Shown here: piece by piece, positions 849-55,637 of the stretch
Layout of the letters: each line of letters starts with the position of its first letter
How positions within the stretch are numbered: the stretch's first letter is position 1
Source of the DNA: Hypanus sabinus
Lineage: Eukaryota
Assembly (NCBI RefSeq): GCF_030144855.1
Contig: NC_082720.1
Span: 79,732,001-79,796,000 of the forward strand
Direction: 5' to 3'
DNA: 64,000 nt
The notes under the pieces: generated by a model
Database searches by the model: none
The model's input: the letters and a program-made list of their open reading frames with translations, nothing else
Told to the model about the DNA's origin: nothing
Made by a program: the position numbers and the translations under genes

Positions 849-1160
<312 letters not shown>

Positions 1161-1241
1161 TTAAGCAATTTAAAAACAAATCATGATTAATATTTAAAAT
1201 GGATCGGGCAATTGATTTTGTAGACTAATAATTATTTTAAA

Positions 1242-2191: not shown

Positions 2192-2344
2192 CAGCCACAG
2201 TACGAGCAGGGACAGATTCTTTGTTTATCCAGAACACAACTTGAGACAAAACTACAGTCATGGTGCATGGGATGTAAGTCTGAGTGAGATAATAGCCTAG
2301 TTTTCTCTGTAGCAAAAAATAGACTATCTGCATGGAATATTCAC
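2192..2344 (-). CDS. GABRA6: GABRA6 exon 7B (duplicated, divergent M1 exon; candidate mutually exclusive exon)
   Basis: tttcag|GTGAA...GCTG|gtatgg; 153 nt, same phase as 7A, no stops; [51 protein letters not shown](G). Confidence 0.85.
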
Positions 2345-2429
2345 CTGAAATGGATAAATGTTGATGGTAAATAAACAAAGACTGGACAATGAATACAGTG
2401 GAAACAAGATATGGTAGATCAAGGCATAC

Positions 2430-2582
2430 CGAAAACTGTTCTAGCTGGGACTGACTCCTTATTAATCCAGAATGACACTTGAGAGAGAATTACTGTCATA
2501 ATGCATGGAATGTAAGTCTGAATCATAAAGTATCCCATCTTCCTTTTTAAGTGAAAATACACTGTCATCACTATGTATTCAC
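2430..2582 (-). CDS. GABRA6: GABRA6 exon 7A (canonical M1 exon)
   Basis: aacag|GTGAA...TTCG|gtatgc; 153 nt; [51 protein letters not shown](G). Missed by the ORF track. Confidence 0.96.
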
Positions 2583-4950: not shown

Positions 4951-6057
4951 CTGTATAACTCCATAATTTCATTGATGTTAGAGGTATGATGGCTAGAACT
5001 TGGGTTAATCAGCACCAACACAAAGTTTTAACCTGGAGACAGGAGTCAAATTTCACCATGGTAGCTAGAGATTTAAAATTGAAACAATTAAATAAATGCA
5101 GAATCAATGTTACTAATAGTAATCATGAATCTGTAGGTTTACTGTAAAATCCATCCAGTTCATTAATGTTCTTCTGGGAAGGAAATTCGGTTACTTTTTG
5201 TGGTCTGGTATATAAGTGGTTGAATTTTAATGGCATCCTCAGTACAAGAGCATATAGGCCAAGACATTTGTTGAACATGCATATCCAAATACATTCATCC
5301 TAAACTACCTGACGAGCTGACAATTTTCAGCTGGTCAAACTTTTAGAATCAAATAGGGAACTTTGTTATCAATAGAAATATAAACATGATGAGATTCCTT
5401 CGTCATTATGTTGAGGAATCTACTCACAGACCCTGGGGTAGGGCAGACTTGGGTAGGATTGGCAAGGCAATTTATTTCAGTGGATGTTTTGAAACAAACA
5501 TGATGGTTTAATCATTTAAAAAATATTTTGGATGATTTGCACTTCTTAAATTGCTGCAATTTTAAGTTGCTTAATTCTTATTTTATACTTTATACACATT
5601 TTTATACATATATCAGAGACCTTTCCAATTTTCCTTTACTTTTGTAGACTGTCAAGTCTGGCCTACCCATATGGCCATGAATAGGGATTCCATAATCAGG
5701 TTCAGGATGTCCTGGGGAAGTTCAGTTTTGACTATATGCAATAGGTATGTGAGGCACAATTTAGCATCTAAACAGAAAATTTAAGAGGTAGGACCTGATT
5801 ACTTAAATCTGGGCCATTATGTCGATTTCTCAATATGTTTCTCTTTGGAACACAAACTAGGTTATATATTGTTCTGTATTAATCATGTCAATTTTGAAAA
5901 CAGATATTAGAATTTCAAAATCACACATAAAGTCATTAATATTTTTGGACAAGGATACTATCAGCCAGTCTATCCAAAATATTGCTTCAACACATTTCCA
6001 TCTGGTTTTGAAGTTTAAAAAGTCAAAACATTTATCAGAAAAAGTAAATGCACTTGC

Positions 6058-6201
6058 CTGTATTGGACTTCATAGTTTCACTGGATACTGTTTGGCCTAC
6101 AAGGTCATACTGAAGCAGACTCGAAGATTCATCTGGTACTTCTACTGAGTACAAGGGACCCTTTTTCCAGGTGTAAATGATCTCACTTCTTGGATAGGCA
6201 T
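6058..6201 (-). CDS. GABRA6: GABRA6 coding exon 6
   Basis: ttgcag|ATGCC...ACAG|gcaagt (GC donor); 144 nt; (Y)[47 protein letters not shown]. Confidence 0.95.
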
Positions 6202-6904: not shown

Positions 6905-7243
6905 CATTATGTACCATGTCGTATGATGTGAGCGATCATGGTCTCTCCATGACCGTGATTGTTCTTGGCAATTCTGGGCAGCGTCTTTACAAGATGGGTG
7001 CCCCCAGCCATTATCAGTACTTTTCAGAAATTGTCTGCCTGGTGTCAGTGGTTGCATAACCAGGTCTTGTGAAATATGCACCAGCTGCTCATACAACCAT
7101 CCACATGCTTCTGAGGCTTCATGTGACCCTGATCAAGCAGCTAAGCAGGTGCAATGCCTTGTCCAAAGGTGACCTGCAGGCTAGTGGGAGGAAGGAACAC
7201 CTCACACCTCTTTTAGTAGAGACATATCTCCACCCCACCACCC
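6905..7243 (-). repeat. Interspersed SINE-like repeat, copy 1
   Basis: Clearly homologous to 14806-15188 (shared GTGTCAGTGGT..CATAACCAGG..GCACCAGCT.CTCATA..ACCATCCA and GGTGACCTGCA.GCTAGTGG). Strand and class inferred. Confidence 0.65.
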
Positions 7244-7295
7244 CCAATTTGGTGATAACCTTCTAAACATTTTTGTCTCGCATACCACAGTGAGC

Positions 7296-7445: not shown

Positions 7446-7998
7446 CCTTTTATCACTGATTAGCGAATTAGCAACAAAAGTTATGGACATTTTAAGGGAA
7501 AAGAATGAGACCTCTAGCTTATTTACATGTATTCATAATTTTAATATCAATAAAGGTATAACAGACTCAGACTGAAATAAATGAAGCTTTTCAGAAAGCT
7601 GGCTAATTATTAATATTAATCTTTTTAAAACAAATGAAAAACAATATTTCTGAATAGCATTATTACTGCACCCTATACATAGGAAATGTGAATGGGAAAT
7701 TATAAGCTTTGGAAAGCTTATAATTTTATTTTCCTACCCTTGATCTTTCATATTTGATCAAGGGAAAGAAAATAAACACACTTTATGCTCAGTGAGACAT
7801 TTATTGCTGCACGATCAATGACAAATATCTGGCCTGTACTGTATTTGGTTGTTTTGGAGCTATACTTGTTGCACAAGTTTCATCAGTATGTCTACCCATA
7901 CTATCTAAATATTGAAGTGTACACCAGGTCTGCGAGGACAAAAAAACTTATCATCCAACGTCACATGTTCTCACGTTTCCTGTGATAACATCTCAGTA

Positions 7999-9836
7999 CA
8001 AGGGGGGAGGAAGTTATGACATGTCCAAGATGGCACATGCAAAAATTTTGTTGACATGTGACATGAAGTGCCTCCCCCCCCTTAACTATTTAAACCCCAG
8101 CCCCATTTTCTTGGATGCAGAAAATGTGAGTGAGAGTACTTAATGAGTACTTTGCTTCAGTATTTACCAAGGAAAAGGATATGGAGGACCAGGAGATCAG
8201 TGCTATATAAATGTTAGGGCATTTAGAGGTCAATGGGGAAGAAGTCTTGGGTGTCCAAAGGAGTATTATGGTGGATAAGTCCCCATGGCCTGATAGGATT
8301 TACCCCAGGTTATTGAAGGAAGCAAGACACAAGATTTCAGTGCGTTTGACCAGTGTCTTAGTATCCACAGGCAAGGTTCTTACGGACAGGCTCTATGAAC
8401 ATTTGGAAACCCATAGCCTAATTAGGGAGAGCCAGCATGACCTTGTGTATGGCAAGTCATACTTTATCAACTTGGATGAGATTTTTGACAAGGTGACAAG
8501 AGATATTGGTGAGGATGGGGCTGTGGATGTTGTCTACATGGATTTTAGCAAAGTGTTTGACAAAGTTTCTTATGGGAGGCAAATCCAGAAGATTAAGATC
8601 CATGGGATCCACAGTGAATTGGCTGTTTGGATTCAGAACTGGTTTACACTTAGAAGACAGAGGGTAGTGGTTGAAGGGACTTATTCAAGTGGAGGTCTGT
8701 AAGTAGTGGATTTCTACAGGGATCTATGCTGGGACCCCTACTGTTTGTAATGTATATAAATTACCTGGATGAAAATATAGATGTGCGGGTGAGTAACTTT
8801 ATGGATGATGTCAAGATTGGTGGAGTTGTGGATTGTGTAAAAAACTGGGAAAGAATACAATACAATATAGATCAGTTGCAAATATGGGCTGAGAAATGGC
8901 AGATGGAATTTAACCCAGAAAAACGTGAGATGTTGCACATTGGTAGGGCAAATGCAAGGAGACGGGTCACTATTAAGGACAAGCACCTTGCACTTAACAG
9001 TGTTGCTGAGGAGAGAGATCTTGAGATTCAAGTTTATAGCTCCTTGAAAGTGGCTACACAGATTGATAAGGTGGTTAAGAAGGCTTATGAAATGCTTGCT
9101 TCTATTAGTTGAGGCATTGAGTTCAGGAGGTTATGTTATAATTTATAAAACTTGGGTTAGGCCACATCTGGAGTATTGCATACAGTTCTGGTCACCCCAC
9201 TATAGGAAGGATGTTCAGGCTTTGGAGAGGATGCAGAAGAGATTCACCAGAATACTGCCTGGTTTAGAGGGCATGTGCTATCACTAGAGGCTGGACGAAT
9301 AGATTGTTTACTCTGAAGCATTGGAGGCTGAAGGGAGATCTGATAGAGGTTTACAAGATTATGTGATATATATAGAGTGGATGGAGAGTATCTGTTTCCC
9401 ACAGTTGAAATGTCTAATACCAGAGGGTATGCATTGAAGGTTAGAGAGGGTAGGTTCAAGGGGGATGTGAGGGTTAAGTTTTTTTACTCACAGAGTCATG
9501 GATGCCTGGAATACACTGCCTGGCAAGGTGGTAGAGGCAAATACATTAGAAGCTTTTAAGAGACGTTTGGATTGACACATGTGTATAAGGAAGATGGAGA
9601 TATATGGACATGGTTAACTGGTTCGGCACAATATTGTGGGCTGAATGGCCTGTTCTTGTTCTGTACTCTTCTACATTCTATGCTTTTGTTGTAAAAAAAA
9701 AACATCATTTGCTGTGTCATTTGGCCATAAAGATTATGGTTGGGGTCTGAAGAATTAAGGGGTGCCACTGCATGTCACATATCAATAAAATCTTTGCATG
9801 TGCCATCTTGGGCATGCCATAAGTTCACCAGCCCTG
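7999..9836. mobile_element. Old non-autonomous DNA transposon (about 70-bp imperfect inverted termini) interrupted by a CR1
   Basis: About 8000-8072 (...TTATGACATGTCCAAGATGGCACATGCAAA...ATGTGACATG) is the inverted copy of about 9761-9836 (CATGTCACAT...TTTGCATGTGCCATCTTGGGCATGCCATAA...GCCCTG). No TSD recognisable. Confidence 0.6.
8110..9685 (+). mobile_element. 5'-truncated CR1 LINE (RT domain and 3'UTR)
   Basis: VDVVYMDFSKVFDKV, LGPLLF, FMDD and RPHLEYCIQFWSPHY motifs with stops and frameshifts. Confidence 0.9.
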
Positions 9837-22600: not shown

Positions 22601-25539
22601 CAGTTCTACTTTCCAGGTTTGCAAACATTTGAAGCCAACAATGCTTTTTGCTCACTTTCAGGTAGAAGAAAATGTTTTTTTTTACACTGAAGTTGTTGAC
22701 CCCATTATTTTCTTCCAACAATATACACCACTAGCTTTTTAGTTCAGACTATACTTGTCTAGGTTCCATTTGAATTTTCCAGTGGCCCCATATAATAAAA
22801 TAATTAGTTTATCTTCAAATGTCTACACATATACCTCTGGTGTACCCCCAGCATATATGCAAACAAGGTCCCTCCTACTTTTTCTTATCTATATGCTGCT
22901 GCTATGCTGTCTCAAGACATTTCACAAAGGTTAGTCTGGAGATGAAAGAATTTACAAACTTGATTAGTACATTTTTGCTTTAGATCACATAATTTAATGA
23001 TAATAAATTTCCAATTGCTTCCAAGTTAAAAGTTTGGCACTGCAATTTCTCATGAGTCAAATAAGGGGAAAACGCATATGATAAAAAATAGGAGCAGGAG
23101 CAGACCTCACCATGCCTTACTTATGCTCAGCCGTGCCTTTGATTTCCATAAGACCTATATCATCTCTTCTGCTTAAAATATTTAATGACTCAGCCACTAC
23201 ACCTCTTTGGCATAAAGAATTAAACTGAATTTGTTTGACTCCTTCATTACACACATTTATATTGTGTTAAAGAATTTATTAGGTCTGCACATCTGTCATT
23301 TGTTTGTAATAATGAAGCAAAGGTTGACTGATTTAAATCTCAGTGACCCATTTTGCACAAGTCTGCAGCTTTCAAGCCTTTAGTGACCAGAATGAAATGA
23401 CACTAAATTATTAATAGAACCCATATTACAAATTGTGTTCTACTTTACAGGTTTGTAAACTTTTAAAACCAACAATGCATTTTGCTCATTTTCACATAGA
23501 AGGAAAATGTTATTAATTCTGCTGATAACATCCCCTTCCAACAACCTCCACCATGAACTTGTTGCTTCCGATTTTGCTTGCATTATTCAATGTTTAGCTA
23601 CCCAGTGGCATCATATAAACATAATAAATGGTTTCTCTTGCAAAGTCTTCACATATACTTCTGAAGTCCCCCAAACATTCATATATTAGGTCCCTCTTAT
23701 TTTTCTATCTACATGCTATCTTCTCCAGTATTATCTTAAAATATAAAAGTTACTAAATATATGGTGAGCAAGAACACATTCCATCTTACCAATTTATTGA
23801 TTATCCATTGTTTCCATGATTGCTTTGCTGATGTCCAGTAATAAAGACTTCCAAAAAAAAGTTTGGTTTTTAGTCCATGGAACCAAATCAAACATTGTAT
23901 TTGGTAACTGAACCAGATTGTCTTTAAATAAGTTTTGAACCATTCATTTGTGACATCAGGAATTCTGCTTATTTCCATCACCATTATCTTGCTTGTCTGT
24001 TGTTAAAAAATCTATTCATCCTTTGTGATCCCTATACAATCTCCATTGGCCTCTCTGTTGACAACCTCAAGATCAAGAACTCAGTTGTCCACATTCTAAC
24101 TTATACCAAGATCATTCATCTCTCACCCTTTACTAAACAAACCACACTGAATCCCAGGTAAGCTATATTTTAACATTCTTACATTTGTTTTCAATATTCT
24201 TTATGGCTTTGCCTCTCCTTATTTCCAAAATATTCACCATCCCAATACACCCAAAGTAATGTGCACTTCTAATTTTATTTTCTGGACCTTCACCAAAATA
24301 GATGGATTTCGGGTGTCATTGCCTTGTACTATAATTTTGTTCATAAGCCTCTCTTCTCTTTCCTCTTTAAAATGATTCTAAAAACTCCTTTAGACCAACT
24401 TTCGATCAATTGGTCGAAGAGTCAATTGCGTAATTCGGTTTGAAATGCATTTGACATCACTCGGAGCTTCAGTTTTTGCCACCCAGAGCACATATCATAT
24501 AAAATATATTGATATGTTGTTGGTTAGACTATGTCCTGAACCAGCATCTAAAAGTAGCAGCAGGCCGATTGTGTTACAATGTTTTGTTCATATACGCAAA
24601 CCTGTAATGTTACCTTGATACTTCCACATCTTTGGATAAATCTTCCTTACCTATCCAAAATTAAATGATTCGGATCCTAAAACCTTCCATAACTTTTCAT
24701 CTCATTTATTGCAGGCTAAACTGTCGATATGAATTGTTTTGATTATTCAACAATCTATGACTGGCAAGATAACAGCCGGTAAATTGTCCTTATTGATCGA
24801 TTAGTTGTTAATATCAACCATTGATGATTTTAATAAAAAAAATGAACCAGTCGAAAGTCTTCAACTTAAATAACGAATTACGGGATTTGTGAATGTTTAA
24901 CTCATCCTAAACAAAAATGAAAATGTATCTGGTATAAACTAAAATACGACCCTCCCTGTTTGTTGGCGATACTAACACATCATCTCTGAAATAACATTAT
25001 AGAAGCAGTAAACAACTCTCGATGGCTGTAAACAGGTACAAAACTGCACAGACAACACGCAACTTGTCCTGTATTAAATACTCCTGTTTTGTACTTTGCC
25101 TTGTAGACAGCCATTTAAGTTAGATAAATGGGACAACTTCCATCAATGTAGACTGGATGTTTCCATTTTACAATCTGAAAATCGTAAGACAGAACTGAAG
25201 GGTAGTGCGTTCATCGCTTTAATTTGATCATTTACATCTCCTTGCGGATTATTTGTAACTGAATAGTAAAATTCAGCATCTAAGGCTCCGAGAGCTTCTC
25301 CGTGCAGGTTACTCACAGCACAAAAAGCGAATCAAACCATTTGATTTACCTCTCCCGTTTGAAATGTGGGGGTAAAGAAAACAAGCTGCATTAAAAAAAT
25401 ATTGACATTTTTGAGAACGAAATGAAAACCCAAGCACATATAAAACGACGCAGGTTTCCGATTGAAATCTTTAACACATGCATCAGCGATTTGTGTTACA
25501 TTAGAGCACCGAGACCAGGATATATATATATTAAGTAAA

Positions 25540-25830
25540 ACAGAGATGCTGCACTCTCGTGGATTTCTGTAAGTATCAGTGGGGAAAGCACGGTGGCGAG
25601 GCGAACATTTCATCCGTTCGCTGTGGCGAGCGGCGAGGAGCCGGAATCCCCCTTTTCCCGCCTCGAAGCCGGTCTCACGTGACCCGGCGTCCGTTAGCCG
25701 AGCGGGGTGAAGCCGAGGGGCTCGAGCCGGCGCGCGGGAGCAGCGGCCAACGGCCAACGGCCTGCGGCTCGCTCGCTCGCGCCCCGAGCGCGCGCAGACT
25801 GGGGAGTGCGTTAAAATACAACCCGAGCCA
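25540..25830. promoter_or_regulatory. CpG island upstream of GABRB2 with E-box TCACGTGAC
   Basis: Very high GC and CpG density; TCACGTGAC at 25675-25683; followed by (CA)n at about 25886-25910. Confidence 0.75.
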
Positions 25831-25878
25831 GCTTTTCTGTTTTGTTATCCCTTCTCCTCCACCAACAACAAAAAAAAA

Positions 25879-25910
<32 letters not shown>

Positions 25911-26532
25911 AAAGCAGAGCGAGGATAGGGAGAGGCGATAGATGTGTGCCTGCGTGCTCACGAATATTAATATGGAGCAAGGCGGAAGCTGGCAGACTCC
26001 CATCTCTGCGATTTTCTGCCTTTTTTTTCCAAAGGAAGCCGTGCGTAGTGCGTGTTTTAGCATCCTCCAGGTTTAAGCAAATTTCCTTTATATTCTTCTA
26101 CCCCCACCTCCTCCCCTCCCCACTGTGGGAATGACGATCCGCCTGTGAGGATAACGATCTGGAAGCAGCACCATGCGCCAAGATTTCTGGAAGAGACAAG
26201 CACACGGTGTCCTTCCACCCTGGCATTTTCAGATGCTCTAACAGGCAGCGTCTAAAGACAGGGTTAAAAGAAAACAAGGGGAGGGGGAAAAAGGAGAAAA
26301 CTGCGTTGCTCAATAGAACAGCCACAGACATCTTGTTTTTCTTCACTCCTCCCCCTCTCTCTCTTTCTCTACCCTTCCTCCCTTCCTTCCTCCTCCCCCC
26401 CCCCATTTAGTTCTTTCCATTTTCTCTCCCTCTTACCCCTCTCCTCTGTTGCTGTTATATTTTTATTTAGCGGAGTGGTGCCGCTTTGCCCACATCCACG
26501 GGCTTTGATGTTGAGGAGCGAGTGAGAGAGTG

Positions 26533-26586
26533 TGCGCAGGCGCCCCCACCTTGGAATTACTGCACTGGTCAGAATAAGTTGGATCC
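26533..26586 (+). promoter_or_regulatory. NRF1-like site plus beta-subunit initiator-like element
   Basis: TGCGCAGGCGC (26533-26543) followed by GGAATTACTGC...TAAGTTGG, about 80-130 nt upstream of the ATG. Confidence 0.55.
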
Positions 26587-26664
26587 TCTCTCTCTATCGC
26601 TGTCTTCGCTGGAGAGAGAGAAAAAAAATAAGAGACCCCCCGACATCATCCGCACAACTTAGGG

Positions 26665-26741
26665 ATGCTGAGAGTCCGGAGAAGGGGCTACTTTAGGGCT
26701 TTGTCGTTCCCCTTGCTAGTGGCGATGGTGTGTGCACAAAG
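26665..26741 (+). CDS. GABRB2: GABA-A receptor beta2 subunit, coding exon 1 (signal peptide)
   Basis: MLRVRRRGYFRALSFPLLVAMVCAQ(S) matches the beta2 leader [26 protein letters not shown]; donor AG|gtaagc; 77 nt. Confidence 0.94.
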
Positions 26742-26867
26742 GTAAGCCATGGTGTCCGAGGTCGGCACCTCTTCGTTTGCAGAATGGCACTTTACTCCAG
26801 GCATTTATTTTTTTCCTTTTAAAAAAACATTATGCCATTTACTGTTACATTTTGCTTTCTTATCCAG

Positions 26868-26959
26868 TGTCAAAGACCCCAGTAACATGTCATTGGTGAA
26901 GGAGACCGTTGATAGACTGTTGAAGGGCTATGATATCCGTTTGAGGCCAGATTTTGGAG
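26868..26959 (+). CDS. GABRB2: GABRB2 coding exon 2
   Basis: tccag|TGTC...GGAG|gtaatt; 92 nt; [30 protein letters not shown]. Confidence 0.97.
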
Positions 26960-27629
26960 GTAATTTGTGTTTTTTTTGGTGTTAATGTGATTCCCTGTTT
27001 GATCCCCCCCACCACACACCTCACCCCTCCTCTCCCCTTGCATACTGACTGCCGTCTAACCCACCATAAGGATTTAAAAGTTCAATTATTGGGACACAAG
27101 TTGCTTGGGTTCCACACAAGGTGTTTGGCTAGTGTCCCTTTCAGTGGGGCTACTCTCACCCTCGGTCAGGATCTGATGGCCAAACGTCAGCCTAAATAAG
27201 TTGTGCTGGTAGTTAATAAACCGGATTCCTCTGGTGGAGGGATTCAAAATAATCACGGAACAGCCGACGATTCGGTGCAAAGGTGAATCCGGACCGGTTC
27301 CCATTTGCACCTTCGATTTAATGAAGTTCAGTGTCCAGTGCCACAATTTTAAGTTCTTGCAACATTTCTGAAACAATCGGTGTTGTAAAGCAGAATATCA
27401 CATGCCGGTCACATACTGTAATGTTACATGGAAGCACTGCATTTTGTGGATGTGCTTAGTTGAAAGAAATGTGATTTAAACCAATGCCTTGGGGGAAGGG
27501 GAGGACGGTGACCACGCTGCCTGGAGTCGGGTTGTAGATGCGTGTTTGTGTGTGTATATGTGTCATTTCTGATGTATTATCGAAGAGTTAAATAAATCAA
27601 CGTTGCGGACGGTCTTGTTTTGTTTGCAG

Positions 27630-27697
27630 GTGATCCTGTGCTGGTTGGCATGAACATAGACATTGCCAGTATAGATATGGTTTCAGAAGTCAATATG
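27630..27697 (+). CDS. GABRB2: GABRB2 coding exon 3
   Basis: ttgcag|GTGAT...AATATG|gtgagt; 68 nt; GDPVLVGMNIDIASIDMVSEVNM. Exon 4 was not found, so intron 3 extends past 64000. Confidence 0.97.
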
Positions 27698-27739
27698 GTG
27701 AGTACACCAGTCTCTTGCAGCAACTCTGAGACCTTTGGT

Positions 27740-28230
27740 CGTGGAATTAACGGGAGAAGTTTTCGTTCGATCGCGATAGTTTGGGTAGCCGCACGTTTGG
27801 ACCACTCCAGCGGCAACCAGCCACATTTCTTTGAAACAGTATTTGCCGGCTGCCAGCATCTGCCGTGCGTGTGTGATGAGTCTCAGGAACGGTGTTGGCA
27901 GTACCGGGCGCGGGGGGCTGCCGAGGTGACCGTCCGTCCGGCTCCGGGCGACCTTTCTCCATGAATGGTGTTGGCAAGGCCGGGCACCGTGAGCGGGCTG
28001 CCACGGTGCTGAGGTGATTTTACGTGAACGGTGTAGACAGCAGCGGGCACCTTGAGCGGGGCGGCGGCGGTGGCGGGCTGCGGGCTGCGGGCTGCCATGG
28101 TGCTGAGGTGACCGCCGGGCTCCGGGCGACCTTTCCTCAAGGTGCCCACGTTCTGCCGTCGAGCAATGGCGCCACCTGCTGGCCCTGCCTGCTACCTGCA
28201 GCTTTCTTAGCCTTCATCGCGGTAAATGTT
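27740..28230. promoter_or_regulatory. Intronic CpG island containing a degenerate GC-rich triplicated unit
   Basis: High CpG; three related units start at about 27887, 27963 and 28026. Confidence 0.6.
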
Positions 28231-32019: not shown

Positions 32020-33615
32020 CCAAGGCATGCAAAAGTTTGGGCACAACTGGTCAAAATTTCTGTTACTGTGAATAGCTAAGCGAGAAAAAGATGAACTGAT
32101 CGCCAAAAGTCATAAAGTTAAAGATGAAACATCCTTTTCAACTTTTTAAGCAAGATTAGTGCATTGTTTTTGTTTTGTACAATTTTAGAGTGGGAAAAAA
32201 AGGAAAGGAGCACCATGCAAAAGTTTGGGCACCCCAAGAGATTTGAGCTCTCAGGTAATTTCTACCAAGGTCTCAGGCCTTAATTAGCTTGTTAAGGCTA
32301 TGGCTTGTTCACAGTCAGTGTTAGGAAAGGCCAGGTATTGCAAATTTCAAAGCTTTACAAACACCCTGACTCCTCAAACCTTGTGCCAACAATCAGCAGC
32401 CATGGGCTCCTCTAAGCAGGTGCCAAGCACTCTGCAAATTAAAATAAATGATGCCCACAAAGCAGAAGGCTATAAGAAGATAGCGAAGTGTTTTCAGTTC
32501 GTAATGTAATTAAGAAATGGCAGTTAACAGGAATGGTGGATGTCAAGTTGAGGTCTCGAAGATCAAGAAAACTTTCTAAGAGAACTGCTCATAGGATTGC
32601 TAGAAAGGCAAATCAAAAGCCCCGTTTGACTGCAAAAGACCTTCAGGAAGATTTAGCAGACTCTGGAGTGGTGGTGCACTGTTCTACTGTGCAGCGGCAC
32701 CTGCACAAATATGACCTTCATGGAAGAGTCATCAGAAGAAAACCACTCCTGCATCCTCACCACAAAATTCAGCATCAGAAGCTTGCAAAGGAACATCTAA
32801 ACAAGCCTGATGCAGTTTGGAAACAAGTCCTGTGGAGTGATAAAGTTAAAATAGAATTTTTTGGCCGCAGTGAGCAAAGGTATGTTTGGAGAAAAAAGGG
32901 TGCAGAATTTCATGAAAAGAGCACCTCTCCAGCTGATAAGTACGGGGGTGGATCGATCATGCTTTGGGCTTGTGTTGTAGCCAGTGGCACAGGGAACATT
33001 TCACTGGGAATGAATTCAATTAAATACCAGCAAATTCTGGAAGCAAACATCACACCTTATGTAAGGAGGCTGAAGATGAAAAGAGGATGGCTTCTATAAC
33101 AGGATAATGATCCTAAACACACCTCATAATCCACAATGGACTACCTCAAGAGGTGCAAGCTGAAGGTTTTGCCATGGTCTTCACAGTTCCCTGACCTAAA
33201 CATCATCGAAAATCTGTGGATAGACCTCAAAAAGCAGTGCATTCAAGATGGCCCAAGAATCTCACAGAACTAAAAGCCTTTTGCAAGGAAGAATAGGTGA
33301 AAATCCTTCAAACAAGAATTGAAAGATTTTTAGCTGGCTACGGACAACGTTTACGAGCTGTGATACTTACCAAAGGGGGTGTTACTCAGTACTGACCACG
33401 CAGGATGTCCAAACTTTTGCTTCGGACCTTTTTCCTTTATTGTTATTTTGAAACTATAAAAGATGGAAATAAAGAACTAATCTTGCCTAAAATATTAAAG
33501 AAATGTGTCATCTTTAACTTTATGCCTTTTGGAAATCAGGTCATCTTTTACTCGCTTAGCTATCCACAGTAACAGAAATTTTGACAAGGGGTGCCCAAAC
33601 TTTTGCATGCCACTG
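32020..33615 (+). mobile_element. Full-length IR/DR-type Tc1 transposon with disrupted DD34E transposase
   Basis: TA at both flanks; about 200-bp TIRs (..GGCATGCAAAAGTTTGGGCAC / GTGCCCAAACTTTTGCATGCCACTG) with inner direct repeats at about 32214 and 33407; transposase from ATG 32402 with LWSD, QDNDPKH and DLNIIENLW motifs, frameshifts and stops. Confidence 0.93.
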
Positions 33616-41255: not shown

Positions 41256-42369
41256 ATCTAGAATATTGGTGACAGGAGCAATGTGCTATAACTTTGGAGA
41301 GGTGCAGGGCAGGCCATGAGCAAAGCTTAGGTTATCAAAAGAAAAATTAAAAGCCTTACTGAGATTAAGACAGGAAAAATTGAGTGAGAAAAGAAACTGA
41401 TAATCAAGGATTGGGAACCGGGGGATTTGAATGCCAGAGAGAAAAGACTGAACAACTCCTTGATATTGTTTCAACTAGACCAGACATACTCAATCTTTTT
41501 GCCCTGAAGGGACCCTTGAAATAATTCTCAGTTCTCAGGGAGCCCCTGCATAATAAGTAATATATCTATAGCTCACGGTACGTTAGCATGATGAGTAAGT
41601 AGTTGATGTAATAATCTTAAAAATAATTGTTAATGCTCTTTTGAGTAGATAGTGAATTTTTAGCTAACTTTTCTTGGGGAAAAAACAGGTAGTTAAGTTT
41701 AGCTTATCTTTATTGAAATTAATCTTTCTTTCCCTTTCATAAATTTTAAAAATGTGTAATGCAAACATAATAAATTTCTGTTAAATAACTGGCTTATAGC
41801 TGAAATGCAATTTGATTTTTCTAAAGGTTGGCTTGGTAGATTTAATTTAAATAGAAGTTGCAAATTGATTTTAGTTAAAAGCTATACTGTTTATGTTGAG
41901 ATTTCTACAGCCATTTAAAATAATCAGCACTTTTTCATGTCATATGGCTGTGACGTAGTTAAGTTTGCTGAAGCCATTGCTGCATTTGTAAGTTGCTTGC
42001 CACAGATTAAGCACAATGAAATAGGGGTTAATAAAATGTACAAAAGAACGGCATGATAAATAACTAAATGAGAAAACCAAAAAAAAAATGAACACTTCCC
42101 AATGCAATTCACTTATAACCAACACCATCCACCATTTGTGACAACAGCAAAGTGGCAGGCCAGCAGCTGAGTCATGGCTGGTAAAAATTCCTTCTTTAGA
42201 ATGAAAATTTCCCTCCAAATTTCTACTATACTGGTAGAGCTTGTTTGCTCCCATAAGTCAGTCAGCTGCGCTTAAGGGGAAGTTGGGAAAGGTAATTCGG
42301 AAGGGAGAGGCTGATGTCACAGCGCAAATTGGATGAGTCCATTCAATGCTCAGAAAACACAATTCACAC

Positions 42370-44066
42370 TCCTCATCAGCCAACCATCCTTCCGTCTGTG
42401 CAATACAGTGTTCAGCATCAGCCTACCGTCCTCCCCTCTGTGCAATACAGCGCTCACCATCAGCCTACCGTCCTCCCTTCTGTGCAATACAGCGCTCACC
42501 ATCAGCCTACCGTCCTCCCCTCTGAGCAATATAGCGCTCACCATCAGCCTACCGTCCTCCCCTCTGTGCAATATAGCGCTCACCATCAGCCTACCGTCCT
42601 CCCCTCTGTGCAATACAGCACTCACCATCAGCCTACCGTCCTCCCCTGTGAAATACAGTGCTCACCGTCAGCCTACCGTCCTCCCCTCTGTGCAATACAG
42701 CGCTCACCATCAGCCTACCGTCCTCCCCTCTGTGCAATACAGCGCTCACCATCAACCTACCGTCCTCCCCTCTGTGCAATACAGCGCTCACCATCTGCCT
42801 ACCGTCCTCCACTCTGTGCAATACAGCATTCACCATCAGCCTACCGTCCTCCACTCTGTGCAATACAGCACTCACCATCAGCCTACCATCCTCCCCTGTG
42901 AAATACAGCACTCACCATCAGCCTACCGTCCTCCCCTCTGTGCAATACAGCGCTCACCATCAGCCTACTGTCCTCCCCTCTGTGAAATACAGCGCTCACC
43001 ATCAGCCTACCGTCCTCCCCTCTGTGCAATACAGCGCTCACCATCAGCCTACCGTCCTCCCCTCTGTGCAATACAGCATTCACCATCAGCCTACCGTCCT
43101 CCCCTCTGTGCAATACAGCACTCACCATCAGCCTACTGTCCTTCCATCTGTGTAATACAGTGTTCACCAGAGCTCACCATCAGCCTACCGTCCTCCCCTC
43201 TGTGCAATACAGTGCTCACCATCAGCCTACCGTCCTCCCCTCTGTGCAATACAGCATTCACCATCAGCCTACCGTCCTCCCCTCTGTGCAATACAGCGCT
43301 CACCATCAGCCTATCGTCCTCCCCTCTGTGCAATACAGCGCTCACCATCAGCCTACTGTCCTCCCTTCTGTGCAATACAGCACTCACCATCAGCCTACCG
43401 TCCTCCCCTCTGTGCAATACAGCGCTCACCATCAGCCTACCGTCCTCCCCTCTGTGCAATACAGCATTCACCATCAGCCTACCGTCCTCCCCTCTGTGCA
43501 ATATAGCGCTCACCATCAGCCTACCGTCCTCCCCTCTGTGCAATACAGCGCTCACCATCAGCCTACCGTCCTCCCCTCTGTGCAATACAGCGCTCACCAT
43601 CAGCCTATCGTCCTCCCCTCTGTGCAATACAGCGCTCACCATCAGCCTACTGTCCTCCCTTCTGTGCAATACAGCACTCACCATCAGCCTACCGTCCTCC
43701 CCTGTGAAATACAGCGCTCACCATCAGCCTACCATCCTCCCCTCTGTGCAATACAGCGCTCACCATCAGCCTACTGTCCTCCCCTCTGTGCAATACAGCG
43801 CTCACCATCAGCCTACCGTCCTCCCCTCTGTGCAATACAGCGCTCACCATCAGCCTACCGTCCTCCCCTCTGTGCAATACAGCGCTCACCATCAACCTAC
43901 CGTCCTCCGCCTTGAAATACAGCACTCACCATCAGCCTACCGTCCTCCCCTCTGTGTAATACAGCACTCACCATCAGCCTACTGTCCTTCCGTCTGTGTA
44001 ATACAGTGTTCACCAGATCTCACCATCAGCCTACCGTCCTCCCCTCTGTGCAATACAGTGCTCACC
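42370..44066 (+). repeat. 42-bp minisatellite, about 40 copies
   Basis: Unit CTCACCATCAGCCTACCGTCCTCCCCTCTGTGCAATACAGCG with occasional 40-bp variants; explains all ORFs at 42314-44189. Confidence 0.97.
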
Positions 44067-45024
44067 GATGATCAAAGGCCTTCCTATCTCATGTCAAAAA
44101 CTGAGAATAAACATGGTCCTACTGTTCTTAGTGGTAAAGAAATAGTCGATGTTTCAGATCAAGATCCTGCATTGGGACTGGTAGTGTAAAAGACAGATAG
44201 CCAGTATAAAGATGTTAGGGTGTGGGGAGATATGGGAGTTGGCTTGCAATAGAAGGCTCAAGATAAGGAGTGGTTAATGGCCAGATGGAGCCAGGTAGGG
44301 CAGGGATGTAAGGAGATTGCAACAGCTGCTGGAAGATGGAAATGGGGACAATAAAATGCTGCAGATTATGGACTCCAATTAGTGGGTAGAATGTTTGAGA
44401 AATAAGCTGATGAAATCTCATAAGGGAGGTTAAAAACCTTATAGATGAAACTTTTACTGAGGTGGTCACACCTAGAGTGCTGGCTTCAGATAGTACATAG
44501 GTATCTACCAGGAGATGCAAGTGGAGTACGCTGTTAGTGCAGGTTTCCCCTCTGGCTGTTCTTCTCAGCAACAAGTATATCCCTTTGCAGGCTGCTAGTG
44601 GGCGGGGGGGGTGGAATGACTTATCAGTACATAGCAGCAGTAGCTAAGTCAATGGCACTGAGGCTCAGCAGGGAAGGGTGAGTTCAGGCAGAGCATTAGT
44701 GATTCTCCAATCACTAGATAGTTAGGGGGATGGTCAGGAGACTCTATTGTCATGGAAGAGTGGCCAAGATTATCTGTTGTCTCCCAGGTGCTAAGGTCCA
44801 GGATGTCTCAGGGTGGCTGCAGAAGATTCTCAAGAGGTAAGTGAGCAGCCAGAGGTCATGGTGATATTGGCACCAATGACATAGGTAGAAATGGGGAAGA
44901 GATCATATGCTGTGAATAAGGCAGTTAGGAAAGAAGCTGAAGAATAGTAATCTCTGGATTACTCCCAGTGCCATGTGTTAATTGAGACAGTAATAGAATG
45001 ATAGTGCAGATGAATAATTGGCTA

Positions 45025-48394: not shown

Positions 48395-49980
48395 CGGGGG
48401 TCGGCAACCTGCGGCTCCCGAGCCATTTGTGGCTCTTTCACCTCTGTGCTGCGGCTCCCTGTGGCTTTGGGAAATAATTGGTCAGTATTTAATTAAAATG
48501 TATTTTATGTTAGTTTGTTAGCTTTTGAAATGTAATTATGGTGATCTTGTACAACCTAAGTGTAGCGACACATTTCCTGCCACATCCGAAACGGCTCACA
48601 ATTAGCCAGCATTCCGGCTAAGGGAGATAGCCTACGGGGGTTTGTGAGTACGCGTCTTTTGCAGCATCTGCGTCCATGGGGGCTGGGTTGAGGGAGGCTT
48701 AAAAGCAAGGCTGTTTAGTTCGAATAAAGCTATCTTTGACTGCAGTTTACTAACACCGCTACAACGTGTTTTTATCGCTGGCTGTCCAGACGGAAGGTGC
48801 TGAAACGCTTTGTCGCGTGTCTGGAAGAAGTGAAAACTTTCCTGGGCAGCAAAGGGCTCACCTTTCCTGAGCTGGAACAGCCAGAGTGGCTGGAAAAGCT
48901 ACACTTCATGGTAGACATGACAGCGCACCTGAACACGCTGAACACAGCTCTTCAGGGGAAAGGACGTACAGCCCTGCACATGTTGGAGGATGTTTTGGCA
49001 TTCGAGCGCAAGTTGACAGTGCTTGCCAGAGATTTACAGAAAGGCACTTTGTCTCACTTCCCCAATTTGAGAGAGTTCAAACAAGGTCACGACATGATAA
49101 TTTCGGAGTATTTACATTCTGCAATCATCGCAATGCAAACATCGTTTGGGAAACGCTTCTGTGAGTTCAGAGAGGAAAAAAACACATTATCCTTCCCGGT
49201 CACTCCCTTAAGCATCGATCCTTCCCTACTGAATACGACTGCATTGGCAGGTGTGAGTCAACCTGATCTTGAGATGGAACTGGCCGACATAGCCGACAAA
49301 GACATATGGGTGTCCAAGTTTAGACGCTTGACAGCAGACCTTGAAGATGTTGCCCGTCAGAAGGCCGTTCTTGCTCAGAAACACAAATGGAGTGATATTG
49401 AAAACCTCACAGATGACAGCTTGCGATCCTGTGTAAAGATGAAGGTGACATCATACAGCCCTGATGTGCAGACGCTGTGCGCTGAGGTCCAGGAGCAGAA
49501 ATCCCATTAACCAAGTATGATAAATATTTTAATTGCCTATTATTTTACTTATATTCATATTTTTTCATTGTTCAGTGAAATAGTCCTTTCATTTTTCAGG
49601 ATGACAGCTGGCTGACGTTATTTTTGGTTTGCTGCTGGCGGAAAATTTAAGTTCGGCGTTTTTCATAAATACAAGAAGGACTCAAATAGACATTGAATAT
49701 TTTACTTAAAAGTAACTTTCAACCCAACGTCTTTTTTTCGGAGTTCAAAATGTTTTTGTTGCATGCAGAAATGTAATTTCGTTTTCTCTGCAGGAGTTCA
49801 TCAATTTCATAAATGCAACACATTATAGTTTGTTTATACATAGCATAAAGGCAAAAAAAACGTTGTATGCAGTGTTATTTCATTTTAAATGTCAAACGGG
49901 TTTTGCGGCTCCCAGTGTTTTCTTTTCTGTGGGAAACGGGTCCAAGTGGCTCTTTCAGTGGTAAAGGTTGCTGACCCCTG
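48395..49980 (+). mobile_element. Internally deleted hAT (Buster/Charlie, GTF2IRD2-like) transposon
   Basis: TIRs CGGGGGTCGGCAACCT / AGGTTGCTGACCCCTG; perfect 8-bp TSD CCCTAGAG; uninterrupted transposase remnant RWLSR.KVLKRF...LNTLNTALQG...QKSH (about 48776-49510). Confidence 0.94.
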
Positions 49981-50553: not shown

Positions 50554-53500
50554 CTTGAAGGTATGTCAAATTTGGTTAGATGGGATACGATGAAATCCTT
50601 TCTTAGGGGACAGATAATTTCATATTCATCAGGTTTAAGAAGGAAAACCAAAGTGGAACTTTTAATGATTATTAATAAAATTAGAGAGATAAATAAAGCG
50701 TATTCAGTAAGACCTAGTGAAGATCTGTATAAGGAAAGGGTTGAACTCCAAACACAGCATGATCTGCTTTTGACCTTCCCCATTGAGCAGCAGAGTTTTA
50801 AATCTAAATGTCATTTTTATATACATGGTGATAAATCAGGTAAATTGCTGGCTGGTCAGTTGAAGCCAAATATGGTCAGAAGATAAATTTTGAAAATACG
50901 TAGACCGGATAGAACTGAAACATTAGACTGTCATGAAATTAATAAGATATTTATGGATCTCTATTCTAATCTATATAAAATTGAATTCTCTGATAATACT
51001 ATCATTATGAATAGATTTTTACAAAAATTAAATGTACCTAAAATTTCTATTCAAGATATTAATACACTAGGAAACATGAGGAAATAGCTAGGGCTATATC
51101 CTCTATGCAACTAGGGAAAGCTCCGGGACCAGATGGATATACAGTGGAATTTTATAAGACCTTTACTGAAATTCTTACATCACGTCTTTGTCAAACTTTC
51201 ACTGATTCTATATCTTCTGGGAATCTTCTGAAAATTTTTTATGATGCATCAATTTCATTGATTCCTAAAAAAGGGAAAGATCTATCTGAATGTACCTCCT
51301 ATAGACCAATTTCCTTATTGAATGTGGATTTTAAAATTCTCTCTAAGATTCTGGCCAATAGGCTTGAGAATCCTTTGCCTACTGTTATTTCAAATGATCA
51401 AACTGGATTTATTAAAAATAGGTATTCACATTTTAATATTAGAAGTTTGTTAAATATTATTTATTCTCAGTTAAAGAATCTGAATGTATTGTTTCTCTCG
51501 AAGCAGGGAAAACTTTTGATAGGGTGGAATGGCCTTATTTTTTTCAGGTTTTGGAGAGATTTAATTTTGGTCCGGGATTTATTTCCTGGATCAAACTGAT
51601 CTATCAAGCCCCGATGGCTGTGGTTATAACTAACAATCAAAAATCTCCTTATTTTAGACTATATAGAGGAACCCGTCAGGGTGGTCCTCTTAGTCTTTTA
51701 TTATTTAATTTGGTTTTAGAACCACTTGCTATCGCTCTTAGGGATTCCAACTCTGTTCAGGGTATTAAGAGAGGGGATAAAGTACATAAGGTTTGGTTAT
51801 ACGCAGATGATTTATTAGTTTACATTTCAGACCCTAGGAAATCTATTCTCTCTATGTTATCCATATTTACTGAATTTAGTACTTTCTCTGGATACAAGTT
51901 AAATTTACATAAACATGAATTAATTACTATTAATAATTATTCTGATCATTATGATCAAATACCTTTTATTATTGCTAAAATTATTTTACCTATCTTGGTA
52001 TTAAAATTACTAAAAATTTTAAAGGTCTATATAAATATAATTTTCTTCCTTTAATTGAATATATACAACAAATGCTTTCCAAATGGTCACCTATGATGAT
52101 GTTGTTAATTGGTTGAATAAATGCTATAAAAATGACAATTTACCAAAATTTTTATACGTTTCAAGCTGTTCCATCCTTTGTCCTGAAAACATTTTTTGAT
52201 AGAATAGATTCTATGATCCTGTCATATATCTGGAATAATAAGAGTTCTAGAGTGAGTAAAACTTTATTGCAAAAATTAAAAAAGATGGAGGCTTGGCTTT
52301 CCCAAACTTTAGATTTTATTACTAGGCAATTAATATTTGTTATATCACTTTTTGGATTCACTGTATAGATAACCAGGACTGTCCTCAATGGTCAGACTTA
52401 GAGGAGAACTCAGTAAGGCAGTTCTCTTTGGCTTCTTTACTGGGAGTTCCTCTTCCTTTTTTGTTTTCCAGGATTGGTAGACAAGATCTTAGTCCCATTG
52501 TTGGACATAGATTAAAAATTTGGTTTCAGTTTCGCAGATTTTTTGACTTAAATAACTTTGTTCTTTCTAGTAATATCCATCTTAACTATTTTTTATAACC
52601 ATGAATTTTAGATAAGGCCTTTTTAACATGGAAAACTGAGGGAATAAAAATGTTTCTAGATTTTTTTTTAAGAGGATTGCTAAATGTCTTTTTCACAGCT
52701 AGTGGACAAATATGATTTATCTAATGCACAATTTTTTAGATATTTACAAGTCAGGAATTTTTTTATGCAATTTGTTACCGAATTACCCATTTGCTCATTT
52801 ACCAGAATGATAGATGTTATCTTTCAGCTTAAACCATTTCAAAAAGGATTGATAGCCATTGTATATAAACGGCAATTGAATTTACGAATGACATCTAATG
52901 ATAAGGTTAAACATGCTTGGGAATTGGAACTTAAAGAGTCACTTTCAGATGATCAATGGAATAAAATTTGTCATTTAGTTAACAATTCATCTATCTGTGC
53001 CCATCACTCCTTGATTCAGTTCAAGGTAGTGCACAGGGCGCATATATCAAAAGATAAACTAACGCATATTCCTTCTAATATAAATCCCACCTGTGACAGA
53101 TGAAACACTGAGGTGGCTACCTTAACTCAATATGTTTTGGTCCCACATAAAGTTAAATAATTTTTGGAGAGATGTTTTTAGAATGTTATCAAAAGTCACA
53201 GGTTTGGACCTACAACCCAATTCATTTATGGCAATCTTTGGGATTATTCCAACGGAAGCAGGAAATGCATGATAGCTTTCTCAACTTTATTGGCTTGGAG
53301 AGCTATTCTATTGTATTAGAAGGATCCCAATCCACCTACTGTTTTTTTCTGGCTGTCCTCCATTATGTTGTGTTTAAGTTTGGAGAAAATTAGGAGTCGG
53401 ACATTTGATACATCTTTGAAATTTGAGCAAATTTGGCGAACTTTTATTCAATATCTTCATATGATCTAATTTGTTTTTCTTTTAAAGTTAATTTTTTTTT

Positions 53501-53835: not shown

Positions 53836-55637
53836 ATGAGTAGGCCTTGGCGAGTGGGATTAAGGAAAACCCAAGGCATTCTACAAGCATGTGAAGAGCA
53901 AGAGGCTAAGATGTGACAGAATAGGACCAGTCAAGTGTGACAGTGGAAAAGTGTGTATGGAACCAGAGATAGCAGAGATACTTAATGAATTCTTTGCTTC
54001 AGTATTCACTACAGAAAAGGATCTTGGTGATTGTAGGGATGACTTACAGCAGATTGAAAAGCTTGAGCATATGGACATCAAGAAAGAAGATGCTGGAGCT
54101 TTTTGAAAGCATCAAGTTGGATAAGTCTCCAGGACCAGATGAGAGGTACCCCAGCCTACTGTGGGAGTCAAGGGAGGTGATTACTGAGCCTCTGACAATG
54201 GTCTTTGCATCATCAATGGGATGGGAGAGGTTCTGGAGGATTGGACTGTTGCATATATTGTTCCCTTATTCAAGAAAGGGAGTAGAGATAGCCCAGGAAA
54301 TTATAGACCAGTGAGTCTTACTTCAGTGGTTGGAAATCTGATGGAAAAGCTCCTGAGAGGCAGGATTTATGAACATTTGGAGAGGCACAATATGATTACG
54401 AATAGTCAGCATCAAAGGCAGGTTGTGCCTTATGAGCCCAATTGAATTTTTTGAGGATGTAACAAAACACATTGATGAAGGTAGGACAGTGGATGTAGTG
54501 TATATGGATTTCAGCAAGACATTTGATAAGGTACCCCATGCAAGGCTTATTGAGAAAGTAAGGAGGCATGGGGATCCAAGGGGATCTTGCTTTGGGATCT
54601 TGCTCACAGAAGGCAAAGAGTGATTGTAGACAGGTTTTCTTCTGTATGGAGGCCAGTGACCAGTGGTGTGCCTCAGGGAACTGTTCTGGGACCCCTTCTC
54701 TTTGTGATTTTTATAAATGACACAGATGAGGAAGTGGAGGGATTGGTTAGTAAATTTGCTGATGACACAAAGGTTGGAGGTGTTGTGGATAGTGTGAAGG
54801 GCTGTCAGAGTTTACAGTGGGACATTGATAGGATGTAAAACTGGGCTGAGAAGTGGCAGATTAAGTTCAACCCAGATAAGTGTGAGGTAGTTCATTTTAG
54901 TAGGTAAAAAATGATGGCAGAATATGGCATTAATGGTAAGACTCTTGAAAGTGTGGAGTATCTGAGGGATCTTGGGTCAAAGTTGATAGGATACTCAAAG
55001 CTGGTGTGTAGGTTGACTCTGTGGTTAAGAAGGTATATGGTGCATTGGCCTTCATCAATTGTGGGATTGAGTTTAAGAGCCAAGAGGTAATGTTACAGCT
55101 AAATAGGACCCTGGTCAGACCCCACTTGGAGTACTGTGCTCAGTCACCTCACTACAGGAAGGAGGTGGAAACCATAGGATGGGTGCAGAGGAGTTTTACA
55201 AGGATGTTGCCTGGAATGGGGAGCATGCCTTATGAGAATAGGTTGAGTGAACTTGGCTTTTTCTCCATCGAGTGTCGGAGGATGAGAGGTGACCTGATAG
55301 AGGTGTATAAGATGATGAGAGGCATTGATTGTGTGGATAGTCAGAGGCTTTTTCCCAAGGCTGAAATGGCTAACATGAGAGGGCATGGTTTTAAGGTGCT
55401 TGGAAGCAGGTACAGAGGAGATGTTAGAGGTAAGTTCTTTTTATGCAGAGAGTGGTGAGTGTGTGGAATGGGCTGCTGGCAACGGTGGTGGAGGTGGATG
55501 TGATAGAGTCTTTTAAGAGGCTCCTAGATAGGAAAGATAGAGGGCTATGGATAACCCTAGGTAATTTCTAATGTAAGTACATGTTCGGCACAGCATTGTG
55601 GGCTGAAGGGCCTGTATTGTGCTGTAGGTTTTCTATG

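Follow-up and report, generated by a model that had tools for sequence, protein, structure and literature searches.

The GABRA6 gene and its two M1 exons

The whole stretch of 64,000 nucleotides that was analysed (the window) carries a GABA-A receptor alpha subunit gene on its minus strand. We mapped this gene by tblastn, using as probes alpha6 proteins that had come out of the database searches. The alpha-6 proteins of Hemitrygon, Hypanus, Pristis and Mobula showed 94-97% identity across the tblastn segments, and the upstream exons aligned to the ligand-binding domain of alpha6 proteins. By these sequence comparisons the gene is the GABRA6 orthologue of a batoid ray, with a protein closest to the alpha6 of stingray, sawfish and manta. 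One upstream exon (16851-16621) carries an Arg at a site where other alpha subunits have His, which we take to be the diazepam-insensitivity site of alpha4 and alpha6. The last coding exon, with M4, lies beyond the window start, and the remaining parts of the gene are arranged as follows:

18175-18050, 17880-17734, 17433-17359, 16851-16621 and 16543-16460, minus strand: upstream coding exons (approximate limits, from tblastn)
6058..6201, minus strand: exon 6, the last extracellular-domain exon; GC donor (CAG/GCAAGT)
2430..2582, minus strand: exon 7A, encoding pre-M1, M1, the M1-M2 linker and the first M2 residues; ends ARTVF
2345..2429, minus strand: intron between 7A and 7B, 85 nt, rich in YCAY motifs
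2192..2344, minus strand: exon 7B, the alternative M1 exon; ends ARTVA
909..1159, minus strand: exon 8, which codes for the remaining part of M2, for M3 and for the beginning of the cytoplasmic loop; weak AAG acceptor

The two M1 exons, 7A (2582..2430 in the direction of transcription) and 7B (2344..2192), were read from the sequence and recomputed, and both measure 153 nt. Each is made of 2 bases, 50 complete codons and 1 base, so that their phase is identical; the first two bases complete a Gly codon and the last base opens the next Gly codon. Their splice sites are AG/GT, with 7A having the acceptor …aaacag/ and the donor /gtatgc, and 7B the acceptor …tttcag/ and the donor /gtatgg. The shared frame is the only one that is open through the two exons, as both other frames contain stops. 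Codon by codon, 14/50 positions differ by a replacement, 20/50 differ only synonymously and 16/50 are identical, which corresponds to a nucleotide identity of 104/153 and a peptide identity of 72%. The two peptides match the Pfam family PF02932 (Neur_chan_memb, the Cys-loop transmembrane region) above the curated cut-off, as does exon 8. The M1 encoded by 7A is of the type present in mammalian alpha6 and alpha4, and the closest solved structures to the 7A peptide are GABA-A alpha4 and alpha6 chains.

Exon 6 faces the acceptors of both 7A and 7B, and exon 8 serves as their common acceptor. A preliminary description of this DNA had reported the 153-nt pair with its phase, splice sites, 85-nt spacing and codon counts, all of which we reproduced exactly; its junction coordinates for the end of exon 6 (6058) and the start of exon 8 (1159) were also right. 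The GC donor of exon 6 is common to the ray and the zebra shark Stegostoma, with GT at this position in six bony-vertebrate loci, and the AAG acceptor of exon 8 is found in the ray, the shark and the stork.

On the opposite strand, at 26878..26961 (+), alpha6 queries gave a weak secondary tblastn match (E about 4e-4) to a Cys-loop N-terminal motif. This motif is presumably beta-subunit-like, and would as such fit a head-to-head GABRB2-GABRA6 arrangement.

Distribution and age of the exon pair

Searching with the 7B peptide by HMMER, we typed the best 150 proteins by their ending (ARTVA or ARTMA as opposed to ARTVF). Twenty proteins among these best 150 ended in ARTVA or ARTMA and, save for one decayed Xenopus laevis model, were 74-85% identical to 7B. 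Most of the twenty were short open reading frames on genomic contigs, in which the exon runs into the intron; one of them (P0001/P0151) reads through 7A, an 84-nt intron and 7B. Tandem 7A/7B pairs were found at five further loci, with AG/GT at every splice site. The species, the source and the length of the 7A-7B intron are:

This ray, the window: 85 nt
Zebra shark (Stegostoma), L006: 84 nt
Sterlet sturgeon, L007: 1449 nt
Xenopus tropicalis, L008: 121 nt
Skink, L002 (reads; for the sequencing run see PMC12400806): 84 nt
Wood stork, L004: 80 nt

Further protein models were collected by word-indexed protein searches aimed at the exon and typed by regular expressions. RefSeq models with 7B were retrieved in this way from lungfish, reedfish, bichir, bowfin, many frogs, lizards, turtles and very many birds, and the elephantfish Paramormyrops has a diverged 7B behind 7A. 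The preliminary description had pointed to ray-finned fish alpha6 proteins with a QRKLGYY…ARTVAG version of the segment, and these do exist, in teleost alpha-6a, sturgeon, bichir, reedfish and bowfin. Closer to the ray, RefSeq models of Mobula birostris, Hypanus sabinus and Hemitrygon akajei (X4) have a 7B peptide 100% identical to that of the window, and the 7A peptide of the ray is identical to that of Stegostoma (dN 0). Separately, one contig (L003) contains a 7B-type exon; the 7 kb upstream of it hold neither 7A nor exon 6, and the contig was left unassigned.

The relationships between the exons were examined with a maximum-likelihood tree of 47 M1 exon peptides over 50 columns, in which the internal order is without resolution. 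All 22 7B exons, teleost alpha-6a included, formed one clade with support of 100/99. Together, 7A and 7B were set apart from alpha1/2/3/5-type M1, also at 100/99, with the alpha4 M1 being 7A-like; this tree describes the M1 exon and not the full-length protein.

Rates of substitution (Nei-Gojobori estimates) point to purifying selection on both exons. Between 7B orthologues, dN was 0.026-0.16 and dS 0.16-1.6, giving a dN/dS of about 0.1; the ray and stork 7B exons, for example, differ by a dN of 0.097 and a dS of 0.854. Orthologous 7A exons had a dN of 0-0.06, with dS mostly 0.4-2.6 and some values saturated, so that 7A is almost invariant across species and 7B is freer. Within species, 7A and 7B are separated by a dN of about 0.2 and a saturated dS. 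The single 7B clade at 100/99, combined with a dN/dS of about 0.1, makes it clear at the sequence level that 7B arose once, ahead of the divergence of cartilaginous from bony vertebrates, i.e., before crown jawed vertebrates. The preliminary description had proposed an ancient duplication under purifying selection and had tentatively dated the pair to early jawed vertebrates; the low 7B dN/dS and a 7B clade that reaches from ray and shark to birds bear out both proposals.

Comparison of the ray and shark loci further delimits the conserved segment. A 488-nt block holding both exons is 87.7% identical between the two species, with identities of 93.5% in 7A, 77.6% in the 7A-7B intron and 94.8% in 7B. 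Outside the pair, identity drops to about 70% over the nearest 100 nt, and most of the remaining intron cannot be aligned. The ray-shark dS was 0.164 for 7B (where dN was 0.026) as against 0.383 for 7A. This lower dS would be compatible with an extra constraint on the alternative exon.

In mammals, the second exon appears to be gone. The platypus locus (L009) contains 7A, then 2620 gap-free bases, then exon 8. Neither tblastn with 22 7B peptides nor an nhmmer profile detected a relic of 7B on the sense strand of this interval, and local alignment against 300 shuffles gave no sense-strand relic either. A weak antisense match of 21 residues contained a stop, and an nhmmer match with an E of 9.5 lay about 115 nt downstream of 7A; we treated both as chance. 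All mammalian proteins that we retrieved are of the 7A type. Mammals have thus lost 7B, as judged from these sequences, and the single exon that the preliminary description had ascribed to mammalian GABRA6 is indeed what we found, both in platypus and in the retrieved proteins.

In teleosts the two forms appear to be spread over separate genes. Proteins that NCBI names alpha-6a (from herring, arowana, archerfish and others) contain only a 7B-type M1, and the remaining teleost alpha6 models retrieved contain 7A, with none of these explicitly named alpha-6b; at least one teleost gene, that of Paramormyrops, retains both exons. One teleost locus (L001) goes from exon 6 to a 7B-type exon and on to exon 8, and the 830 nt that separate exon 6 from 7B contain no 7A; this locus is of the alpha-6a type according to the NCBI naming of identical M1 peptides. 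From the distribution of M1 types it would seem that, following the teleost duplication, one gene with both exons gave way to two genes with one exon each. In zebrafish, gabra6a and gabra6b have been treated as ordinary paralogues, with the M1 difference unmentioned (PMC5922542).

These data also bear on whether 7B still functions in the ray. If 7B were dead or decaying, the gene would produce the 7A form only, and the open frame and the splice sites would be leftovers. Such a state would agree with three Logan contigs of 2.1-2.2 kb, which encode 490-aa 7A-only proteins with a profile of identity to the window like that of the little skate Leucoraja. However, identical 7B peptides are found in stingray and manta RefSeq models that use 7B alone, and the ray-shark identity of 7B is above that of 7A, with few replacements among its substitutions. 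In addition, the frame and the AG/GT sites are intact at every jawed-vertebrate pair locus examined, and the platypus interval indicates that after a real loss nothing recognisable is left. We therefore regard a dead 7B as extremely improbable, and favour a 7B that is maintained by selection.

Choice between the two exons

Evidence for how the exons are used came from transcript contigs and from annotated isoforms. A frog cDNA contig (L005, run SRR27929940) of 1840 nt has an unbroken ORF of 458 aa, in which exon 6 is joined to 7B and 7B to exon 8. A bird cDNA contig (L010, SRR23174785) of 3038 nt has an unbroken ORF of 465 aa, also of the 7B type and with the same junctions from exon 6 to 7B to exon 8. 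Together with the three skate-like contigs, all single-source Logan contigs of cDNA size that were examined (5/5; two with 7B, three with 7A) contain exactly one M1 exon.

Isoform models of the same gene show a similar pattern. In Engystomops, Corvus moneduloides, Erpetoichthys and Pogona, RefSeq contains isoform pairs that match in length and are told apart by the M1 exon alone. Among cartilaginous fishes, where pairs were typed by M1 exon and equal length, we found 7A/7B pairs in Hemitrygon akajei (X3/X4), Chiloscyllium punctatum (X2/X3) and Stegostoma (X3/X4), and models that use 7B alone in Mobula birostris, Hypanus sabinus and Carcharodon. An apparent lack of 7B-only proteins in sharks turned out to be an artefact of clustering at 90%, which had hidden these proteins inside 7A-led clusters. 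It should be noted that the RefSeq X-isoforms are computational models.

The databases also contain RefSeq and GenBank models of 500-540 aa in which 7A is followed in frame by 7B, including Stegostoma X1/X2, Hemitrygon X1/X2, Chiloscyllium X1-X3, a 72-member bird cluster and several frogs. Taken at face value, these many models would mean that both exons are normally included together, so that the protein has two M1-like helices or the product is made and then degraded. The 85-nt intron is long enough to be spliced and has canonical sites and a plausible branch point, and the joint product keeps the frame, so that nonsense-mediated decay (NMD) would not remove it. Nevertheless, by the established topology of these receptors an extra helix would turn M2-M4 around in the membrane, and the Cys-loop fold does not allow this. 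The cDNA-sized contigs, each with a single M1 exon, and the clean single-exon isoform pairs in the very same genes also speak against joint inclusion, and none of the both-exon models listed has a Logan (transcript-assembly) source. Models of this kind would be expected from protein-to-genome or ab initio pipelines wherever homologous exons are adjacent and in frame. The both-exon models are therefore probably annotation artefacts, and we consider normal co-inclusion very unlikely.

We infer that an mRNA normally carries exactly one of 7A and 7B, a view that for this ray draws on conservation and on the models of related rays. The one-or-the-other splicing that the preliminary description had predicted is thus found in relatives, in the 7B-only cDNAs of frog and bird and in the four isoform pairs that differ only in the M1 exon. 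Its stricter form, in which the exons never occur together, agrees with the single-exon cDNAs and the isoform pairs but not with the annotated both-exon models.

An additional possibility is that each lineage or tissue has one default exon and that the other is used at noise level, in which case there would be no two physiologically distinct channels. Frogs and skates could be read in this way: in frogs, 7B is what the primary models and the cDNA contain, and for several frog species every listed model is either 7B-only or both-exon; the skate-like cDNAs use 7A. The near invariance of 7A, next to a freer 7B, would also be in line with one dominant form. On the other hand, the annotated protein of Xenopus tropicalis uses 7B, and yet 7A remains intact there, with good splice sites, and purifying selection has acted on both exons since before the cartilaginous/bony split. 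The occurrence in teleosts of 7B-only alpha-6a genes and of other alpha6 models with 7A is likewise what would be expected if both forms are needed. We give the default-exon possibility only a small chance, and favour a gene that makes real use of both exons.

Several mechanisms could underlie the choice between the exons. NMD was rejected as the enforcer of exclusivity, since the exon length of 153 nt equals 51 x 3 and the inclusion of both exons or of neither keeps the frame. Steric hindrance was considered because the 7A-7B intron is only 80-85 nt long in ray, shark, skink and stork, with neighbouring introns of about 0.4 to 4.9 kb. In these short introns, candidate branch points (yUnAy, picked by eye) are about 58-62 nt away from the 7A donor, close to the minimum branch-point distance known from work on alpha-tropomyosin; splicing of 7A to 7B would thus be borderline. 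As a general mechanism steric hindrance was rejected, since the intron measures 121 nt in Xenopus and 1449 nt in sturgeon and the pair therefore does not require a short intron. It may contribute where the intron is 80-85 nt long.

The sequence of the inter-exon intron offers a further candidate mechanism. YCAY motifs occur 4-6 times in each of five inter-exon introns, as compared to 0-2 times in seven control intron ends, and the fraction of shuffles that reached the observed count was 0.01-0.08 per intron. This conserved YCAY cluster suggests regulation by NOVA-type factors. The weak sites that both splicing routes share, namely the GC donor of exon 6 in ray and shark and the AAG acceptor of exon 8, would also fit a regulated choice.

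Two probable alpha6 subunits and comparison with known systems

The segment that is exchanged between the isoforms begins at the end of beta10/pre-M1 and runs through M1 and the M1-M2 linker into M2, of which it takes in the first four residues. Across all aligned species, the consistent changes from 7A to 7B are I/V3 to S/A, M5 to Q, M15 to L/I, F18 to Y and F50 to A, with otophysan teleosts and Paramormyrops being exceptions for F18 to Y. In most lineages 7B also has S36 changed to V. S36 adjoins a Gln and a Trp that we take to be residues of the neurosteroid site, and F50 is presumably the 3' position of M2, with the swapped segment reaching M2 positions 0' to 3'. In other subunits (alpha1 and others) the swapped regions couple agonist binding to gating and line intersubunit pockets for lipids and drugs, and the intracellular end of the pore is linked to desensitisation. 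The solved alpha4 and alpha6 structures all have a 7A-type M1, and none has the 7B type; nor did the literature searched yield any physiological work on a 7B-type subunit.

Our data are best explained by a tandem-duplicated pair that is older than the last common ancestor of today's jawed vertebrates and of which both members were kept. With one of the two exons per mRNA, the gene would make two alpha6 subunits that are otherwise identical. The corresponding channel types would be expected to differ in gating, desensitisation or sensitivity to modulators. Overall, we hold it highly probable that 7A and 7B are an ancient, selected and alternatively used pair of GABRA6 M1 exons that gives rise to two alpha6 subunits.

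The expression of alpha6 in the eye raises a more specific idea. Zebrafish gabra6a is found mostly in the photoreceptor layer, and the same study cites robust photoreceptor expression of Xenopus alpha6 (PMC5922542); the listed Xenopus models use 7B. Since the alpha-6a genes are 7B-only, these observations allow the tentative and rather doubtful reading that 7B forms the ancestral photoreceptor or retinal alpha6 channel and 7A the cerebellar type. Under this reading, splicing factors specific to neuron types would make the choice by acting on the conserved, short, YCAY-rich intron, F50A and the M1 changes would alter desensitisation or tonic current, mammals would have lost the 7B channel and teleosts would have hard-wired it in gabra6a.

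Isoforms with 7A and 7B are already present in RefSeq for many non-mammals, and what is new here is the recognition and dating of the pair. Our full-text searches, outside of which subscription-only papers lie, returned no paper that describes the exon pair, and none that dates it or deals with its mammalian loss or with the teleost gene split. Since RefSeq isoforms exist and no describing paper was found, the pair appears to be annotated but undescribed.

The diversity of GABA-A receptors is usually counted in genes, of which mammals have 19. In most non-mammalian jawed vertebrates, one of these genes would encode two alpha6 subunits that differ in M1 and at the cytoplasmic mouth of the pore, in regions implicated in gating, desensitisation and the pockets for anaesthetics and steroids. 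For studies of expression or pharmacology, the alpha6 of chicken, frog, lizard or shark should therefore not be regarded as a single entity. The pair may also be seen as a natural experiment on the roles of individual residues, having been kept since before the cartilaginous/bony split, apparently divided between genes in teleosts and deleted in mammals, and it shows cleanly how duplication of an exon and duplication of a gene can stand in for one another.

Among known systems, the closest within vertebrate Cys-loop genes is GLRA2, whose exons 3A and 3B are, like 7A and 7B, adjacent, homologous, equal in length and alternatively used. The GLRA2 exons encode part of the extracellular domain, differ by two residues and are kept in mammals, whereas the GABRA6 pair exchanges pre-M1, M1 and the beginning of M2, with 12-15 residues differing, and was lost in mammals. 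GLRA2 3A/3B is also a classic NOVA target with intronic UCAU repeats, a signature that the conserved YCAY cluster between the GABRA6 exons resembles; NOVA dependence of GABRA6 is a prediction from this resemblance.

A second parallel is the insect nAChR alpha6 gene, in which exon 8a/b/c encodes a transmembrane part (TM2). The preliminary description had placed the exclusive exons of other Cys-loop genes in the extracellular domain, which agrees with GLRA2 but, if this location of insect exon 8 holds, is wrong as a general statement. PMC1919356 describes the alternative exons 8a/8b/8c, as well as exon 3, and their conservation. Insect exon 8 resembles 7A/7B in being a set of tandem-duplicated, exclusive Cys-loop exons with a conservation over hundreds of millions of years and lineage-specific loss of copies. 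It differs in belonging to the cation channel branch and in having three copies, and represents an independent duplication.

Outside the channels, exons 5a/5b of SNAP25 (PMC2581893) are likewise an ancient vertebrate tandem exon duplication that yields two exclusive neuronal isoforms, with duplicated genes in teleosts. SNAP25 is a soluble SNARE rather than a channel and, unlike GABRA6, retains both exons, 5a and 5b, in mammals. For GABRA6 itself, the zebrafish genes gabra6a and gabra6b are the teleost descendants, in which the two forms would be carried by two genes and not by two exons.

Splice sites of the exons shared by 7A and 7B

The tandem alternative M1 exons of GABRA6 (7A and 7B) share the exons on either side of them, and the sites by which these are joined depart from the usual consensus.

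6056-6057, minus strand: donor of exon 6, CAG/GCAAGT
1160-1162, minus strand: acceptor of exon 8, AAG in place of YAG

Since the intron downstream of exon 6 begins with GC, it is a GC-AG intron. Among the loci compared, the ray of the window and the zebra shark have this GC donor; the donor is GT in sturgeon, Xenopus, skink, stork, platypus and one teleost. Ray, shark and stork all have the AAG acceptor at exon 8, a weak site through which both 7A and 7B have to be spliced.

Sequence upstream of GABRA6

25300-27000: GC-rich stretch between two putatively divergent genes, including an (AC)n-like run
42300-44200: long tandem array, GC 0.53, strongly C-skewed
8200-9100, 32500-33100, 48800-49500, 51100-52050, 55000-55460, 57190-57600, 58870-59280 and 62080-62560: many broken, transposon-like open reading frames, assigned on their translations alone

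The GC-rich stretch may be a shared promoter region of the two genes; the highest-GC 2-kb bin in that part of the window is 26001-28000 (GC 0.49), and the possible beta-subunit exon at 26878-26961 (plus strand) falls inside the stretch. The tandem array translates, in several frames and on both strands, into unending repeats of about 14 residues (…PTVLPSVQYSAHHQ…), and looks like a minisatellite and not a gene. The broken reading frames resemble reverse transcriptases and Tc1/mariner-type transposases, with possibly a hAT-type transposase among them, and are probably interspersed repeats occupying the region upstream of GABRA6.

7A and 7B in other loci and gene models

In several public models (P0003; fusions P0252, P0253, P0256 and P0356-P0359) an identical M1 exon occurs twice, or alpha6 is run together with alpha or beta subunit genes next to it. 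These duplications and fusions are annotation errors, of a type that can pass for exon duplication.

A divergent 7B-type exon with good splice sites lies at 7109-7258 of a contig from ENA assembly ERZ26222911 (L003); neither 7A nor exon 6 was found within 7 kb upstream of it. At the platypus GABRA6 locus (L009), the first ~70 nt past exon 7A (7713-7785) end in a good pyrimidine tract and TAG, and are like a remnant of the short inter-exon intron, a resemblance that is not significant. Nor is there significance in a 21-residue 7B-like match, interrupted by a stop, that lies 1.7 kb downstream on the other strand (9396-9458).

Both exons are present in a model of the lungfish Protopterus annectens named alpha-4-like isoform X3 (P0261), which is either a misnamed alpha6 or a sign that lungfish alpha4 likewise has a 7A/7B pair. 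In the 300-aa Xenopus laevis model XELAEV_18016985mg (P0002), 7A and 7B are both decayed and part of exon 8 is missing; this looks like a degenerating second GABRA6 copy of the allotetraploid frog.
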